Below are positions 1 to 9,279 of a DNA stretch of 64,000 nucleotides, piece after piece. How positions within the stretch are numbered: position 1 is the first letter of the stretch; every line of letters starts with the position of its first letter. The position numbers and the translations under genes were made by a program. This DNA is from Thalia democratica. Its lineage: Eukaryota. Under the pieces are notes generated by a model. The model was given only the letters and a program-made list of their open reading frames with translations, did not search any database and had not been told where the DNA came from. Where the stretch lies: contig OZ241829.1 of the NCBI GenBank assembly GCA_965202585.1, positions 28,334,001-28,398,000 of the forward strand, in the 5' to 3' direction.

Positions 1-1025
1 AATCGAAAACAAGTGATCAACAAGATTCAGTTGATCAAGAGATTGAGACAAATTTTTTTTTGGCTGAAAAAAATTTATCTGACCACCATGTTCCGTTTAT
101 TCTGAAATGTTATTTTCAGACGCTGGTATTTTGTACGAACAAAATCGAAATCAATTGCTTCCAAATTAGCAAAAGACTTTTATATCTTCAAAAAAACTGG
201 AAAAAACAAGTTAAGGTTTCTTTGCAGCTTAATGGCGTTGTTATGAGTAAATGTTATTTACTAAATTACTTACTTTTATATATGTAAAGTAAACATAAAC
301 AGTTACTAAAGAAGTTAATGTTTATCTTATAGTTCGAACTTTTATAAATAATAGTATAATGTAAAGCTTAACATAATTAAAATAAATAAAGTTCTTAATG
401 TTTAAAGCATTGTACATTTAATTTATTCTTGTTTTACGTCATACAAGGTACAAAATTCAAGTTTAATCATATAAGTAGCTTGAAATTTAACACTTAAACT
501 TAGATTTCATATAAGTAGATTTTTAATTTAACGTTCTTATTCCTAATGTAAAAATATAACTTTTAGATATTGTATAATTTAGATATTTTGATATTTAGAA
601 TAACATTGTGTCTTTTTGACATGTAATGCATTGGTAATGCATCCCTGATATTAAGTGTAGAATATCAAAGTGAAACTGTACAGCCAATCATAATCAGCAA
701 ATTGCTAATTACTTATTATTATTATGCAAAAATTGCATTTATCTAGTTTGTAAGTTACAAACAAATATTTTTATTTTACTATTTTTACTAAATAAGGGTA
801 TTATAATATCTCAATTTTATAAATTTATTATACCTGAAACTACACAAAACTTAAAACATTTAGGATCCGGAACCGGATCCGGCTGGATCTTAATTAACAA
901 AAATAAATCTGGAACCAGATCCGGCCGGATCCTAGTTCTAAAATAAGGTCTGGACCTGGTTCGGGCAGGATCTTAAACTATAAAAAAGATCCAAATCCTG
1001 CCGGGACCTAAATAGTAGATCACTA
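1..1025 (+). mobile_element. hAT DNA transposon, 3' portion (copy A), truncated by the window start
   Basis: 1-~1025 is a diverged inverted match to 3799-4213 plus 9024-9360. It ends in GTAGATCACTA (1015-1025, reverse complement of the TIR TAGTGATCTAC), preceded by clustered (CC)GGATCC(GG) subterminal repeats at 861-1010. Frame 3 at the start reads SKTSDQQDSVDQEIETNFF, matching the transposase tail of copy B. Confidence 0.8.
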
Positions 1026-2890
1026 TTTATTTCTTTTAACGAATACAAAAGATACCTCAAAAAACATAGATGTCCCAGAAATAAGTAAAAACATATTTAA
1101 ATTGCAATATATTTTGAAAACACCAACATCTTAGCACCTGATAACTTAAGCACTTATTTTTCTTTACTGATTAAATCCATTGACTTTTATTTATATAAAC
1201 CGAGTGATGATAGACTTAGCCATTAAGAAAGTGTCTATATCTTATTTAAGACATACTGTTTATAGGAAAACAATAGTTTTAAAGCTGAACAATTAAAAAT
1301 GTTACAGCTTTACTATAACAAAGTTGGCATAAATTTAAATTTAGAAATTAAAAAATGCTTTTTAGTACTCACGAATTATTTTTGTTTTAACTTCTTAATA
1401 ATAAATATTAGTAAAGTTTATTACAACCAAATTGTAAACTGCAGAAAAAATATTAAAATGTACATATCAAAAAAATTCTAAATTAACTGTTATGACTAAG
1501 TACAAACTTGTATAATACGTTAAACAAAAAACATATATTAAAAACATTAGCAACTTCAATTATATAGTCAAGTAAAATAGTGATTTATAGCCAAAATCCC
1601 CGTCAAAAACAATAAGTTAATATCTTTCTTTGACTTTGCTTTTTAAACCAAAAGTAAAAATTTCTTCAAACTAATTTTTTTATTCATAATGTACGCAGTT
1701 TAAATTAATAAACATATTTCTTCTACTTTAACATTATAAATATTTAATACTTTATCTAAAATATTTTGCAATTTACTGAAAATTAAAGCATCTCTTATTC
1801 ACTAATGGATACACAATATCTTCAAAAAACTGTAATACTGGCCGAAAAGTTTTTTCGTGCACCAGGTTCTTAGACCAAATATTTTTACCTCTTATTTTTA
1901 AACTTTAATAAAGAATAAAATACACTTTGAATTTAAAAAATCTCATTTTTTCATACTAATTTAATATATATCGGCCTTATATCGTCAGAGACGTAAAGTA
2001 CAGAATATTAACAAATGAAATTATAAAAAAAAAACTTAAGCAATTAATGCGAGATCGAACGAAAAACAAATCAATATATATTTTATCAATAAACTAGAAT
2101 AAAAATCAAGCTTGATAAAATGGTGTAAGAAGTAAATAAATTTACTTTATGATTAACAAAATAAGACCGGCAAACTGCAGTCCGCGAAATGCATTTTGGC
2201 ACAAAAAAAAATTTTTTTGTTTTATATACAGAATAAATGTATTAGTTCTGACAAAACTGATCTCTAATAGTCATCGTTTTTTTCATATTTTTCCTGTATT
2301 TTTTTAAGGAATGTTTCCAATAAGTTTGAAAAACAAAAACATACATTTAGTCAGTTTAAGGTTTTTGGAAAACTAATGATAACAAATCTGTGGTCTACCT
2401 ACCTTTTGTATCAAAAACTTTTTTTAAGTTGACTTTGTCTCAAAAATAAATTTAAAGTTTTTATTTTATGTAAGATGTAACGGGAAATAATTATTTTATT
2501 AATTTCAGTATGTAATTGTTTGTAAAAAAAATAAAACCTCCTCGTTTTAATAGAATACTCAGGCTTAATATATACATAGTAATTACTTCTTATTTAATTA
2601 GGCTTCATAAAATACATGATTTTTTACGTAAGTTATTAAAATAAAGTACTTCTTTATTAAGCAATGTTTCAATACTAACCCTAAAGTAAATAAATATCTA
2701 ACACTTCACATCAAGAAAGTTCAAGAGTAAAAAGCTTTTATAATCGTACAGTTATTAGCTAAATTTATGATATATTAAAACAAACTTAAATTTTTGTTGC
2801 TTAGTTTATCATTCTAGTTTCTTACAAGTTATTTTAGCCAGTATTTATTTCGGCCATCATCAACGAAGTTGAGATGTTTTATGCAATCGA

Positions 2891-3126
2891 TAATAAACAA
2901 TGAATTTTACCGCAAGATCAACAACAACAGCATCCGAGACATTTTTTCAACTTTACCCACAAATGGTCGCTTCAGTACTTCGTACTTAATCCCGCTTGTT
3001 TAAGTTCACAATAGCAGTTTCTCGCGACTATTCCTGCCTGATGAGTCCTAATAAGGACGAAACCGGTCGTAGGATTGTCTCGGATGCTGTTGTTGTTGAT
3101 CTTGCGGTAAAATTCATTGTTTATTA
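2891..3126 (+). mobile_element. Penelope-like solo pseudo-LTR with inverted tail, carrying a hammerhead ribozyme
   Basis: Perfect 51-bp inverted repeat (2891-2941 / 3076-3126) enclosing a type I hammerhead. A hammerhead plus an inverted partial copy is the known architecture of Penelope-like pLTRs; the family assignment is inference. Confidence 0.65.
3033..3073 (+). ncRNA. Minimal type I hammerhead ribozyme
   Basis: CCTGC-CTGATGA-GTCC(TAATAA)GGAC-GAA-ACCGGT-C|GTAGG. Intact core, stem II GTCC/GGAC, palindromic mini stem III ACCGGT, GUC cleavage triplet ending at 3068, stem I CCTGC/GTAGG. Confidence 0.9.
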
Positions 3127-4213
3127 AGTTATTTTAGGAAGTAATGACGTTTTGTTGAAGTTAATTTTGAAAGTGTGTTTTAAAAAAACAAAAACACAGC
3201 ACTTATCATTATGGTTTGTAGTAAATAATTAATACTTTTATCTCTCTCTTTGAAACAACTGAATGCAGGCTAACTACGAATATACGTTTTATGTATGTTT
3301 TATTTATCGCTTGATTGTTACTTAATTGCAATTTCGAAGCCAGGTGTCAATTAATTGAAGGAGCAGTCATTTAAAAATCAATATTTTAAAACTAGCGGTT
3401 CTTAAACTTAACAATTTTGAATGTGATAAACATGTTAATTAGGCAATTTTGCGGTTACAATAGAAAGTATTAATGCTTTGTCTACAAAAACATCTAAAAC
3501 CTTATTTTGTTTTGAAGTGTTACTTTTTTCATAGAAAAGAGGTTATGTTGTGCGCTTGATTAGGCAAGCCAACCGGCCAATGCTATAACTTGTAAAAACT
3601 AGCGCCTTTTAAGGTCAAGCTAACAATTTTAATTGCTTTTGGGAGTTTTTAATTTATGCTGATTGCAGCAAGTTTTTTGGGGTAGCTTTGGATTTCCATT
3701 ACAAGCTTTAACCAATCAGAGCCAACTTTGTTTTGACTGTATTAACAGTATTTTAATAACAACTGATGCTAAACTGAAAACTATTTGTATGTAATAAAAA
3801 GTGATCTACCGGATCCACTATTTAAGACCGGATCCTAAATGTTTTTTAATTATGTAGTTTCAATAGTCAAGAAACTTATAGAATTTAGTTATTATGATAC
3901 CATTAACTAGAAAAAATAGGTTGATAATTTTTTTTTGTTAGAAAAAAATACAATGTTATTGTCTAAATATTTCGTTTTAACATTAGGAAAAAGAACGTTA
4001 ATTAGAAAATTTACTTATATGAAATCTCAGCTTAAATGTTAAATTTCAAGCTACTTATACGAGTAAACTTGAATTTTGTACCTTGTATGACGTAAAACAA
4101 AAAGAAATTTAATGTAACAATGCTTTAAAGAATAATGAACTTTATTCATTTTAATTATGTTAAGCTTTACATTATACTTTTACTTATAAAATTTCGGACT
4201 ATAAGATGAACAG

Positions 4214-4317
4214 TGTATAAGTATTTACCTAGCTTTCATTATGTTTTCTTGTACAGATTTTATCATTCTTTTAATTAGTTTGTAAATAAACTCAACAAAG
4301 AAAGATATATTTATTTA
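4214..4317 (+). repeat. 5' LTR (104 bp, TG...TA)
   Basis: Identical to 8915-9018; TATAA at 4216-4220 and AATAAA at 4285-4290. Confidence 0.97.
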
Positions 4318-4871
4318 TGATAAAATCTTATTCAATATTTGAATATAGTACAAGACAGGATTTGACTGAAAACACGAGATCATTTGCTGCCCGTTTAAAG
4401 GGAAAAGCTAGTACATGCTCGTACTCATGTAAATGCCCAAAGGATGGCTGTAACCAAATGATAGATTTCACAGACATTATCCTTAAAGATGTCATGGTAA
4501 CCGGTTTAGCTGATGAGGATATACGCAAAGAGGTGTTAGGATGGGGTAGTTTAGACGAGAAAGATGTCAATGAGACAATTGGTTTTATTGAAGCAAAAGA
4601 GATGGCACGTGATGCAATGACACAACCTGCTGTTACTGCCTCAGTTTCCTCGTACAAATCCTTTAGGAAAATTACAAAACGACCAAGTGGTAAAATAACT
4701 TGTAATATATGTAGTAAAACATCTACAAAATTTATTTGGAGCAGGAAAAATAACAAGTATATTGAGTGTTCTACATGTAAGCAATGCTGGATTAAATCCA
4801 GGAAAAAAGTTTATCATGGTGACAACAATTGTGCAGATGAGACGAATGCACTTCTAGTTGGTGGATCATAG
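4317..4871 (+). CDS. gag: Gag, apparently N-terminally truncated (184 aa)
   Basis: Capsid C-terminal-like RQDLTENTRSFAARLKGKASTC and GLADEDIRKEVL segments, then a Cys-rich basic region (CNIC...CSTCKQC). The ATG straddles the LTR end. Ends at a TAG that is in frame with pol. Confidence 0.75.
   Translation: MIKSYSIFEYSTRQDLTENTRSFAARLKGKASTCSYSCKCPKDGCNQMIDFTDIILKDVMVTGLADEDIRKEVLGWGSLDEKDVNETIGFIEAKEMARDAMTQPAVTASVSSYKSFRKITKRPSGKITCNICSKTSTKFIWSRKNNKYIECSTCKQCWIKSRKKVYHGDNNCADETNALLVGGS
4318..4328 (+). promoter_or_regulatory. Putative self-priming primer-binding site (non-tRNA)
   Basis: TGATAAAATCT abuts the 5' LTR and is the exact reverse complement of AGATTTTATCA at 4255-4265 inside the LTR. 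There is no TGG-initiated tRNA-type PBS. Confidence 0.7.
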
Positions 4872-7800
4872 ACACAAAATTTTGATCAGTCAGTTGATGT
4901 TAATGATAGTGTAGTAAAACTTGGTCATTACGTCTTTGATTGTTTGAATGGATGGAAAGCATCAGTGTCACTGAAACATCCAATAATTCAATTAAAAGCT
5001 TCTATTGATGAACAAGCATACACTCAGATGAATATAAAATGCCCTAGACAAAATTATTGCAAAATTAATGTCGTTACAGATACGGGTGCTCAGTCATGCT
5101 TATGGGACCTTAATAGTTACCTCAAACATGGTTTTAAGAAGTCAAGTCTTATACCAGTTAAAAGGAAAATGTTAGCGGCCAACAGAGAACAGATCAAAAT
5201 AACTGGTGTTATATTTATGGAATTAATGGTTAAAGATGTACAAGGTAAAGTTCATGTTGCAAAAGAAATGGTATATATAAGCCCATGTACTGACAGGTTT
5301 TTCCTTTCAAGAAATGCCTGCATAACACTTGGCATAATAAATCATGATTTTCCTCGTATTGGTGCGACCATTGAATCCTGCACTGTCCATGAAGAACTGC
5401 AAACTTGTGATTGTATACCTAGAACTCCTCCCCCTGATAGGTCAAAGGAGTTGCCATTTGCTTGCATTCCTGCAAACAATCAAAAGATGAGAGAATGGCT
5501 TTTAGATAGGTACGCATCATCTACATTTAATAAATGTACTCACCAATTGCTTCCAGAAATGACAGGTCCACCTTTGAAAATTCATATTGACCCAGATGCC
5601 ATTCCAAAAGCAATATCAACTACTTCCCCAATTCCAAAACATTGGGAAAATGAAGTAAAAGAAACTTTGGATAGGGATACTCGATTAGGTGTGCTTGGTA
5701 AGACTCCAGTTGGTGTTCCGTCTACTTGGGTACATCGTATGGTTGTGGTTGCTAAAGCTGATGGTAGCTGTAGAAGAGTTGTTGACCTTTCGCCTTTAAA
5801 TAAGTATTGTGTACGAGAAACACATCATGTAAAGCCTCCATTCATTCAAGTATGTGAAATTCCTGCAAACACCTGGAAAAGTGTGACCGATGCATGGAAT
5901 GGGTTTCATTTAGTACCACTTCGTCCAGAAGATCATCATCTCACAACATTTCTCACTCCATGGGGGAGGTACTACTACAAAGTAGCACCACAAGGTTATT
6001 TGGCAAGTGGAGATGCATATACGCGCAGGTATGATGAAATCATAATAGATATACCTAGAAAGACAAAATGCGTTGATGACACTGTTTTATGGGATGAGAA
6101 GTTGGCTGATCATTGGTGGCGTATGATTGACTATTTAGATTTAATGGGAAAAAATGGAGTTGTACTCAATCCTGAAAAGTTTCAATTTGCACAAAAAGAA
6201 ATAGACTTTGCTGGCTTTACTATTACGAAATCTGAAATTAAGCCACAAGAAAAGTTCATAAATGCTATTAGAGATTTTCCTATACCAAAGTCAATAACAG
6301 ATGTGCGATCATGGTTTGGTTTAGTGCACCAAGTTTCACACTACAACCAATTGACTTCTTTGATGATTGTGTTTAAGCCATTATTAAGTCCAAAAACTAA
6401 ATTTTACTGGAATGATGAGCTAGATGATACATTCTACAAATCAAGAGAAGCTATAGTTGCAGCCATAACAAAGGGAATACAAATTTTTGATTTGGGAAAG
6501 CCCACTTGTATACAGCCAGACTGGTCTACAACTGGTATTGGTATTTTTTGTCGCAGAAACATTGCTCTTGTAAGTCTGCTGTGCCAGGATGTTGTCAAAC
6601 CGGATGGCGTATTGTTTTAGCAGGCTCTCGCTTTCTTAGACCTTCTGAATCACGTTATGCTGCGGTAGAGGGAGAAAGCCTTGCAATTGTATGGGCACTT
6701 GAGCAATCACGGTATTTCACACAAGGATGTGATAATTTGTTGGTTCTGACTGATCACAAACCACTGGTTAAATTATTTGGAGACAGAACACTTGATGAAA
6801 TTGCAAACCCCCGCCTTTTCCTGTTAAAGCAGAGAAGTCTTTTATGGCGATTCAAGATTCTACATAAACCTGGTAAACTACACCTTGCTCCAGATGCAAT
6901 GTCACGTCATCCAGTGGTTACCGTACATAAAACAAAAGATGAAGTTGAGATAAGTGCTTCTGAAATTTTAGCTGGAATACGTTTGCCAGACAGTGAGTGT
7001 ATCATTGCAAGTAATCAAGTAGGTGACAATTTTCAAGCTGTGACTTTTGACCGAGTTAAAGAAGAAACTTTAAAAAATAAACAAATGATGAAGCTTATTC
7101 ATTATGTTCAAGCTGGTTTTCCAGAGACCAAAGACCACCTACCATTAGAATTGCATGAGTTTTGGATAGTTCGCTATTCTTTGTTTATGATGGATGGGGT
7201 CATTATGTGTGGTGATTGTAAACGAGAACTTGATCATAATAAGTTTCTATCACCTAGCAGTATACTTAAGGATGATGTGTATAGAATTGTTATTCCTCCA
7301 TCATTAAGAAAAGAGGTTTTAAGAGTGTTGCATTCTGCTCATCAAGGAGTCACTGCAATGAACGAGCGAGCAAAATCGATTGTTTATTGGCCGGGAATAA
7401 CAAATGACATTCAAGGCTGTCGGGAAAATTGCAATAGTTGCAACTTAATTGCACCAAGCAATCCTCGCCTACCTCCAATTGAACCATTGATTCCAAAGGT
7501 TCCTTTTGAGTCAATTGTTTGTGATTATTTTCAGTTCAAAGGTTGGTATTATTTTGTAGCTGCCGACAGACTTTCAGGATGGACAGAACAACTAAGAATC
7601 AAATTGGGTACAAATGATTCTGGTTCAAAAGGGCTGTGTAAAGCTTTGCGTCGTATTTTTGTGACTTTTGGTGTTCCAGTTGAAATATCTTCTGATGGAG
7701 GTCCAGAGTTTTCTGCAAAAGTTACCAAAGATTTTCTGAAACGATGGGGTATACACCATCGTATGTCATCTGCATATCATCCAGTGTCAAACGGTAGGGC

Positions 7801-8716
7801 GGAATTAGCAGTAAAGGCTTCTAAGCGATTGTTAATGGAGAATGTTGGTTCAAATGGTGAACTAAATAATGACAAAATGGTACAAGCTTTACTTACGCAG
7901 AGAAACACGCCTGATCCAGGATGCAAACTATCACCTGCACAGATCCTTCTTAGAAGAAATTTAAAGGACTCCTTGCCTTTCCTCAGGAAGAGTATTATGG
8001 CTTACAATAACCCGCAGATCTTAAACATTTGGCGTAACGCATGGAGTAAAAAGGAAGAAGCTCTTAGGTCTCGTTATGTTAAGTCTCTCGAGAATTTAAG
8101 TGAGCACACAAGATTGTTGCCACCATTGAATTGCGGTGATCATGTCATGATACAGAATCAAGCAGGTAACTTCCCTAACAAGTGGGGGAAAAGTGGTGTA
8201 ATAGTAGAACTAAAAGACTATCATCAGTATGTTGTCAAGATTGATGGATCAGGTCGCTTAACTGTACGAAATCGAAAGTTTTTAAGAAAATTTAATCCTC
8301 CTGTTTGCAAATCTCAAAATAGTATCCCTTATCTTAGAAAAGCAAACATACCAACGCAGAAGTTGTTTTTTTCTGGCAACTATGAGAGAAAAGATTCCAA
8401 GGAAAGTTTTGATTGTGTGCGCTCCCATAAAGGAATACGTTTCAAAGCTGGAGATAACTTTGACAAAATTTGCAAAGCGAAACCAGCTACCTTCCTTTCA
8501 CCTGAGGACTCAAATTGCACTGAAGAAAGCCAATCCTCTACAAATCAGAAAAATGGTGTATTGTCTCGTTTGGACCCTAATGATAAATCTAGGGTATTTG
8601 AAAGAAATTTTAATGACGATGGAGTATTTCCAGAAAATGAACTGCGCCGTTCCGGTCGTGTAAGAACCCGGAGAAAGATTTATGATGCCGAAAGCGGTAC
8701 ATACAAACCTGTTTAA
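4872..8716 (+). pseudogene. pol: Pol polyprotein (protease, RT, RNase H, integrase) split by a 1-nt deletion at ~6542
   Basis: Protease VTDTGAQS; RT DAWNGFH, PQGYLASGDAY, CVDD; RNase H QPDWS, YAAVEGESLAIVWAL, TDHKPL; integrase HSAHQG...C..C, DYF, SDGGPEF, SNGRAE. Restoring one T in GGT(T)ATTTTTTG joins ORFs 4944-6620 and 6506-8716 as TTGIGYFLSQKHC. Confidence 0.92.
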
Positions 8717-8905
8717 ACTGTTGTTAAAATTAATGTTTTTTTACAAATTGTAACTATGTTTATTGTAACATTTTAGTGATTTACGTTCGTTTTGAGTGTT
8801 GTTTCGTTGATGTTAGCACAGAAAACGGTATTTAAGTTTGCAATTTTGTAAATAATTTGTTTTGTTAGCTAGACGTGTCGTTTCATCTCCTTGGTGATAA
8901 AATCT

Positions 8906-8914
8906 GGGGGGAGA
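8906..8914 (+). promoter_or_regulatory. Polypurine tract
   Basis: GGGGGGAGA immediately before the TG of the 3' LTR. Confidence 0.9.
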
Positions 8915-9018
8915 TGTATAAGTATTTACCTAGCTTTCATTATGTTTTCTTGTACAGATTTTATCATTCTTTTAATTAGTTTGTAAATAAACTCAACAAA
9001 GAAAGATATATTTATTTA
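8915..9018 (+). repeat. 3' LTR (104 bp)
   Basis: Identical to 4214-4317 and followed by the TSD AACAG. Confidence 0.97.
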
Positions 9019-9279
9019 AACAGTAACTTCTTTAGCAACTGTTTTTTGTTACTTTACATATATAAAAGTAAGTAATTTAGTAAATAAAATTTACTCTTAA
9101 CAACGCTATTAAGCTACAAAGAAACCTTAACTTATTTATGAAGATATAAAAGTTACCAGCGTCTGAAAATAACATTTCAGAATAAACGGAAGATGGTGGT
9201 GCCGAAAGATAGCTTCTGTGTGTTTTTTTTTCTGTTTTGAGTTACACAAAGACAAAACTTCAGCTTCTTAAACTTTTCA

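Follow-up and report, generated by a model that had tools for sequence, protein, structure and literature searches.

A chromodomain-less Ty3/gypsy clade of marine plankton with Tf1-like self-priming geometry, as seen from a defective copy in Thalia democratica

How does a long terminal repeat (LTR) retrotransposon start its minus strand when the sequence past its 5' LTR offers no site for a transfer RNA (tRNA)? The question was raised by the sole LTR retrotransposon in a stretch of 64,000 nt of Thalia democratica DNA (contig OZ241829.1, positions 28,334,001 to 28,398,000; hereafter the window, located at C5:28.33 Mb of a genome of 801 Mb with ~25% G+C). The element lies at window positions 4214–9018 on the plus strand, as do all of its parts described below, and has identical LTRs and a 5-bp target-site duplication. 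A first-pass annotation, made from the letters of the window alone, had proposed that it primes reverse transcription with the first nucleotides of its own RNA, as does Tf1 of Schizosaccharomyces pombe, and that this capacity might have arisen independently of Tf1. We examined both parts of this proposal by comparing the element with its copies in the genome and with related families in public assemblies.

The geometry of the LTR and of the sequence following it was as the annotation had described. The 5' LTR (4214–4317, TGTATAAG...TTTATTTA) and the 3' LTR (8915–9018) are each 104 nt long and 100% identical, and they are flanked by the duplicated target site AACAG (4209–4213 and 9019–9023). 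Because this duplication flanks both LTRs, it establishes 4317 as the last LTR base whatever priming model is assumed. The 11 nt from the first base past the LTR onward, TGATAAAATCT (4318–4328), are the exact reverse complement of AGATTTTATCA (4255–4265) within the LTR (11 of 11 nt); we refer to the former as the putative primer-binding site (PBS) and to the latter as the putative self-primer. The complementarity in fact comprises 12 nt, as T4266 pairs with the terminal LTR base A4317. The TATAA element noted upstream of the LTR 11-mer was also found, as TATAAG at 4217–4222, 38 nt before 4255. When the LTR was shuffled 20,000 times, a complement of the post-LTR 11-mer occurred with P = 0.0003 (2.6e-4 analytically). 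Calculated for the individual families compared below, the chance of such a match ranged from 7e-6 to 2e-3, and the product over eight families was ~1e-31.

The absence of a tRNA-type PBS was likewise confirmed. The post-LTR sequence of the window element begins with TGA rather than TGG, and the 3'-CCA end of a tRNA therefore cannot pair with it; a TGG start was found at none of the post-LTR sites of the twelve families compared. An Rfam search of positions 4150–4450 gave no match, and ARAGORN detected no tRNA genes, either in the window or in loci totalling 350 kb. An Rfam tRNA search of the genome provided a list of tRNA-model positions.

If the two arms work together as primer and primer site, then related elements should carry different sequences in the same arrangement. 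A protein search retrieved more than 1,500 relatives (50–77% identity) from public, mostly marine, assemblies. Twelve families with 55–85% identity in reverse transcriptase (RT) and RNase H (RH) were compared: the window family, another family of the T. democratica genome (L071), and ten relatives from public assemblies. Each of the twelve had its own, distinct inverted pair of 9–13 nt, with the right arm starting at the first base past the LTR. Given as LTR arm and post-LTR arm, the pairs were AGATTTTATCA and TGATAAAATCT in the window family, AGATTTTACA and TGTAAAATCT in L071, GTTTAATCA and TGATTAAAC in L037, AGCACAAACA and TGTTTGTGCT in L035, GAATCATTTATCA and TGATAAATGATTC in L036, AGAAACAACA and TGTTGTTTCT in L038, AACTAGTGTGTCA and TGACACACTAGTT in L039, AGATTATACA and TGTATAATCT in L040, AGTTATTAAGA and TCTTAATAACT in L072, TGCCGCGTTCA and TGAACGCGGCA in L073, ATGTCTGTACA and TGTACAGACAT in L074, and GATCAAGCA and TGCTTGATC in L075.

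Counted from the priming site, positions 3–8 of the duplex showed two to four Watson–Crick pair types each and no mispairs, so that six of eight positions covaried, while positions 1–2 were nearly fixed (the primer ends with CA and the site starts with TG). The LTR end was fixed by a 3' LTR and a target duplication in six of the twelve families (AGTTG, CCTAC, TACTT, ATTTA and AACAG). Full-length relatives with a longer LTR followed by a tRNA site, which the annotation had named among the outcomes that would speak against its proposal, did not appear; the co-variation between the two 11-mers for which it had suggested a test was present in all twelve families, with different sequences in the same geometry, and the self-priming interpretation gained support accordingly. 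Co-variation within the window family had been considered as a further comparison and was set aside as uninformative, since the arms were invariant in 30 copies, the single exception being one uncompensated PBS base in copy L007.

The position of the arms within the LTR was compared as well. The left arm started 46–68 nt before the PBS in all families, while LTR length ranged from 104 to 601 nt and the part of the LTR upstream of the arm from ~40 to 543 nt. A constant distance combined with a variable upstream part is as expected if the arm marks the start of the RNA, since in that case U3 alone would vary. In most families the arm starts with or just after AG and is preceded by a pyrimidine-rich tract (pyrimidine tract plus YAG); the window arm, preceded by such a tract and CAG, resembles its relatives in this respect, and in five families the complementarity ends exactly at that AG. 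An A[AT]TAAA motif lies in the loop between the arms in 7 of the 12 families, represented in the window by the poly(A) signal AATAAA at 4285–4290. In minimum-free-energy folds of the putative 5' RNA the 5' end paired with the PBS in all eight families folded, and in six of the eight folds a hairpin of 4–5 bp adjoined the PBS duplex on the U5 side. Judging from these folds, the hairpin may be an analogue of the U5-IR.

In Tf1, it is the 5'-terminal 11 nt of the mRNA that anneal to the PBS, and once RNase H has cut the duplex the end released in this way serves as primer (PMC4600332, PMC10085805). Applied to the window element, this scheme would have transcription start at A4255, which would leave a U3 of 41 nt (4214–4254, delimited by the primer-arm position and containing TATAAG) and 63 nt of R and U5. 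The first 11 nt of the RNA, AGAUUUUAUCA, would fold back onto UGAUAAAAUCU just beyond the LTR, and the element's own RNase H (an RNase H domain, PF17917, is present) would cut after nt 11, at A4265. The freed 3' end, with A4265 paired to T4318, would then be extended from A4317 back to 4266. The resulting strong-stop product would consist of 52 nt of DNA with an 11-nt RNA head and would be transferred to the 3' R, where synthesis would go on. Plus-strand synthesis would start at the polypurine tract (PPT) GGGGGGAGA (8906–8914), which adjoins the 3' LTR, and copying of the RNA primer would regenerate the PBS in each cycle. Because the PBS would be rewritten from the RNA 5' end each time, the arms would be expected to be always perfect and to change together.

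With the anatomy, the right arm at the exact LTR end, the missing tRNA-type site and the co-variation in twelve families all observed, Tf1-like self-priming from the first 11 nt of the element's own RNA is the best reading, and we hold it with considerable confidence. Several points weigh against it. The transcription start, the RNase H cut and priming from the duplex are what we infer from this arrangement. Marine metatranscriptome contigs cover most of the element in fragments, and no starts, ends or poly(A) tails are visible in them. The LTR end was deduced in six of the twelve families (L037, L038 and L072–L075), whose contigs are tandem or circular assemblies; the exact match in L037 is only 9 nt long, and the left arms of L073 and L074 lack the preceding AG found elsewhere. 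Priming by an internal tRNA fragment, moreover, was excluded by argument only.

This last point leaves room for a host RNA as the primer, either an internal tRNA fragment as in copia elements or Ty5 or some other small RNA, with the match to the LTR being secondary. Half-tRNA priming does exist in Ty1/copia lineages (PMC6317226). Sites derived from tRNAs are, however, conserved among related elements, whereas here each family has a different site that matches its own LTR. The two families resident in the one genome also carry different sites (TGATAAAATCT vs. TGTAAAATCT), which differ by a compensated one-base indel, and this speaks against a shared host primer. In addition, an 11-mer with 82% A+T is unlike nuclear tRNA sequence, and Rfam was blank for this region. 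We therefore regard a host primer as very improbable. Simple chance deserves even less weight: an LTR with 80% A+T makes short matches commoner than they would be in balanced sequence, but the shuffling result for the window copy alone (3e-4), together with the product of ~1e-31 across eight families of differing sequence, means that this explanation has already been refuted by the comparative data.

A more substantial alternative is that the duplex is a structural RNA with another main job, such as masking of the 5' poly(A) signal, packaging or dimerisation, and that the primer is an unrecognised one. The AATAAA at 4285–4290 does lie within the loop closed by the duplex, as does the A[AT]TAAA of the other families that have it, and the complementary site follows only the 5' copy of R–U5, so that a hairpin would tell the 5' from the 3' poly(A) signal. 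A generic hairpin, on the other hand, need not begin exactly at the first base past the LTR, yet it does so in 12 of 12 families. Nor is there an alternative primer site in its place, as the post-LTR sequences have neither TGG nor any stretch conserved across families, and a primer is still needed there. A structural role in occluding the 5' poly(A) signal may thus exist alongside priming but supplies no primer, and as a replacement for self-priming we consider it unlikely, though less so than a host RNA.

Having arrived at self-priming as the preferred reading, we asked to which lineage the element belongs. Its LTRs, target duplication, PPT, the order protease–RT–RH–integrase, a gypsy-type RNase H and an H2C2 integrase place it in Ty3/gypsy (Metaviridae). 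The best solved relative of its RT-RH profile was the Ty3 RT 4ol8 (E 2.5e-46), with caulimovirus and foamy-virus enzymes next in rank; the structure prediction for the integrase (mean pLDDT 52) was too poor for a fold search. In agreement with the annotation, no chromodomain (PF00385) was found at E ≤ 0.1 in the open reading frames (ORFs) of the window or in the intact canonical polyprotein of the family, and there was none among the 120 relatives listed. Chromodomain matches elsewhere in the genome had been considered as resident chromoviruses for the tree and were discarded, as those examined were host genes of HP1 or SUV39 type.

The RT motifs reported for the window element, DAWNGFH, SGDAY and CVDD, were present and conserved in 32 relatives as DAWNG[FY]H, PQG..SGD.Y and CVDD; typical gypsy-like RTs in the same motif comparison had PFG..AP and YxDD. 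A literature search for a CVDD-type RT found no account of one. The annotation's statement that the RT is unlike that of Tf1 also proved correct: RT-RH identity in a Foldseek comparison with Swiss-Prot was 21% to Tf2, no closer than the 22–23% to Ty3 and the 24% to gypsy, 297 and opus. A search with the RT-RH profile over 1.8 billion cluster representatives gave 9,612 matching clusters at E ≤ 1e-30, ordinary gypsy RTs included. Within this set a large RT superclade (clusters P0137–P0285) was seen in which the catalytic DD is preceded by a non-aromatic residue ([CIV][VI]DD) and P[QM]G..SGD.Y replaces PFG..AP.

An RT-RH tree of 95 rows (IQ-TREE quick, SH-aLRT support, unrooted) gathered the 12 self-primed families into a single clade of 20 rows (97% SH-aLRT), itself within a clade of 52 rows (100%). 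Across the branch with 100% support were a PYG..ISEHY group with [KR]IVDD, a group with PMGL..GDE[FY] and KVVDD, and typical PFG/YxDD RTs. Primer sites in this tree were read in the self-primed families and in one member of the PMGL group, L076, which has 35–39% identity to the self-primed families. Its LTR is of the TG...CA form, and the sequence past it, TGGCGCGGTCGGTAGGAC, has no complement in the LTR; this site, TGGCGCGGTCGG..., is instead complementary to a real tRNA 3' end, one that occurs in tRNA-Arg genes on metagenome contigs. An assignment of the L076 site to tRNA-Ser was not confirmed, and we limit the claim to a site of tRNA type. In the tree, typical gypsy RTs and the self-primed clade have the tRNA-primed L076 branching off between them.

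On this basis it is somewhat more probable than otherwise that self-priming arose, or was retained, independently of Tf1/sushi in a large Ty3/gypsy clade of marine plankton that lacks a chromodomain, has an atypical RT active site (CVDD, PQG..SGDAY) and has more distant relatives that still use a tRNA. A separate origin is favoured because the element placed between ordinary gypsy RTs and the self-primed clade is tRNA-primed, and also because the clade lacks a chromodomain, has only ~21% RT-RH identity to Tf2 and lacks one of the RNA helices on which Tf1 depends. Tf1 requires a "pretzel" RNA of three duplexes, namely primer:PBS and two further duplexes between PBS-adjacent sequence and the LTR (PMC10085805). 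The central duplex was present in our families, and the side duplex (a helix between the loop and the post-PBS sequence) was not above shuffles in any of the 12. The tree contained no named Tf1/sushi, Mag or other references, and the independent origin that the annotation had suggested for a Ty3/gypsy lineage is thus favoured, by the missing chromodomain, the missing side duplex and the position of L076, but not proven.

Compared with systems described so far, the elements represent a new clade of a known self-primed kind and no new mechanism. Self-priming is established in Tf1, with Tj1 and the Tf1/sushi group proposed to do likewise (PMC4600332, PMC10085805), and it has been documented or predicted for Tf1/sushi chromoviruses of fungi and vertebrates, for the Tcn1 clade of non-seed plants and for the TAR lineage of copia elements (PMC6317226, PMC10085805, PMC6934838). 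With Tf1 and Tf2 of S. pombe and Tj1 of S. japonicus, the window family shares the lack of a tRNA site and, in its canonical element, a single gag-pol reading frame as in Tf1. It differs from them in lacking a chromodomain and the side duplex, in its CVDD and PQG..SGDAY motifs, and in its marine eukaryote host. The vertebrate Tf1/sushi elements (sushi-ichi) and Tcn1 have the same LTR/post-LTR complementarity and predicted self-priming (PMC6317226, PMC10085805), but they are chromoviruses that cluster with Tf1, whereas in the window clade no chromodomain was found, and the tRNA-primed L076 lies between that clade and typical gypsy RTs.

The TAR lineage of Ty1/copia (Houba, Osr-1) resembles our clade in that self-priming is predicted for it outside Tf1/sushi (PMC6317226), and therefore indicates that unrelated lineages can acquire or keep the trait. 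It belongs, however, to another superfamily (with copia domain order) and to plant hosts. Steamer/Mag-type elements have a single gag-pol frame and 5-bp target duplications, as does the window family. They are also alike in their length of ~5 kb, their short LTRs and their marine invertebrate hosts (PMC8905726). The difference lies at the primer site: right past its LTR Steamer has a 12-nt tRNA-Leu site, TGGTGTCAGAAG (PMC8905726), where the window family has TGATAAAATCT.

In the literature searched, self-priming was confined to Tf1/sushi chromoviruses (of fungi, vertebrates and non-seed plants) and one plant copia lineage. The same geometry in a widespread, chromodomain-less marine clade widens the range of hosts and lineages of the mechanism and suggests either repeated evolution of it or a greater age than had been supposed. 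If the separate origin is true, LTR retroelements would have come to tRNA-independent priming repeatedly, and the clade would supply a dozen or more natural compensatory variants of the primer duplex, without the Tf1 "pretzel". A practical consequence is that PBS finders based on tRNAs will mis-annotate members of the clade as having no primer site. PBS-targeting defences by tRNA-fragment small RNAs have been discussed for mammals (PMC7472051); tRNA-independent elements would escape defences of this kind, so that the clade offers a natural system in which to test them.

An exact second copy of TGATAAAATCT, which the annotation had missed, adjoins the PPT at 8895–8905. It was exact in 59 3' junctions of the window family, and the 77%-identical L037 retains GATAAAATCT before its PPT though its own PBS has changed; no such pre-PPT copy was found in eight other families. 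G-rich tracts comparable to the window PPT precede the LTR in all relatives. The PBS of Ty3 is bipartite, with 5' and 3' parts that both bind the initiator tRNA. The window family resembles Ty3 in having PBS-related sequence near the RNA 3' end, here as an exact second PBS copy beside the PPT, and differs in that this copy is exact only there and is missing in the eight other families. The idea that the copy is a conserved part of the mechanism was rejected because it is exact in the window family alone and because L037 keeps GATAAAATCT despite a changed PBS. It was also considered as the source of LTR–PBS–PPT–LTR tandems, of which the genome contained none with up to three mismatches. As far as the sequences indicate, the pre-PPT copy probably stands outside the core mechanism. 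At the RNA level this copy could base-pair with the beginning of the 3' R over a loop of 50 nt (PPT plus U3), mirroring the 5' hairpin.

Exact matches across the genome numbered 143 for the LTR core, 69 for the junction of LTR end and PBS, and 59 for the PPT (3') junction; these counts show the window family to consist of ~70 very young Ty3/gypsy-type copies. Canonical copies are 5.21 kb long and have 5-bp duplications of their own (ACACC, ACTGT), and one of them, L033, has a single gag-pol reading frame of 1451 codons. The window copy is a recently inserted, defective derivative. In alignment with L033 its positions 1–116 correspond to 1–116 and its positions 133–4805 to 538–5211, so that 16 nt (4330–4345), part of a palindrome, ATTCAATATTTGAAT, stand where the canonical copy has 421 nt of leader and gag 5' end. 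What follows is a gag remnant (4346–4871, stop at 4869–4871) that lacks ~140 N-terminal residues and matched no Pfam family. The first part of pol (4872–6620) encodes a protease (DTG) and the RT with DAWNGFH, PQG..SGDAY and CVDD (PF00078 RVT_1, E 3e-12); the second (6506–8716) encodes RNase H and an integrase with an H2C2 zinc finger, a DDE core and a short C-terminal beta domain (PF17917, PF17921, PF00665). The ORFs 4944–6620 and 6506–8716 overlap because a 1-nt deletion relative to L033, at 6543, shifts the pol frame.

Identical LTRs and an intact duplication indicate that the window copy was copied and inserted despite these defects. Since this happened with 421 nt of leader and gag gone, LTR, PBS and PPT were enough in cis for it to be copied. 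Several further copies are 5'-deleted like that in the window (window 4329–4345; L002–L009 at ~1605–1640 each), with left breakpoints clustered 7–20 nt past the PBS and right breakpoints scattered in gag, protease and RT, a pattern suggesting that templates were switched late in minus-strand synthesis or during plus-strand transfer. The N-terminus of canonical Gag (L033:631–730, and alike in relatives) contains a conserved Cys/His motif, MP.I.CP...C.Y.T....VAAALL..H...H, for which no Pfam match and no CCHC knuckle were detected; it may be an unusual N-terminal zinc finger.

A few further observations concern the families and the host genome. On the metagenome scaffolds of L038, L072 and L074, element–LTR–element tandems with one LTR in common were seen, which are either real arrays or an assembly collapse of two LTRs. 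The leader TATTCAAATAGAATCT past the PBS is common to the L008/L012 subgroup of the window family and to L071 (L071:1557–1572), despite a protein identity of ~55%, which points to recombination between the families or to a conserved leader signal. One marine metatranscriptome contig contains a variant LTR with the primer arm ACAGACTTTATCA instead of ACAGATTTTATCA (L033:561), the matching PBS lying outside the view. Finally, ~60 identical weak tRNA-model matches (38.6 bits) recur every ~16.03 kb at G000:C6:22746503-24124559 of the genome, in one block facing one way and a second block facing the other; they mark a tandem array on the megabase scale whose 16-kb unit is possibly DNA of organelle origin or resembles ribosomal DNA.

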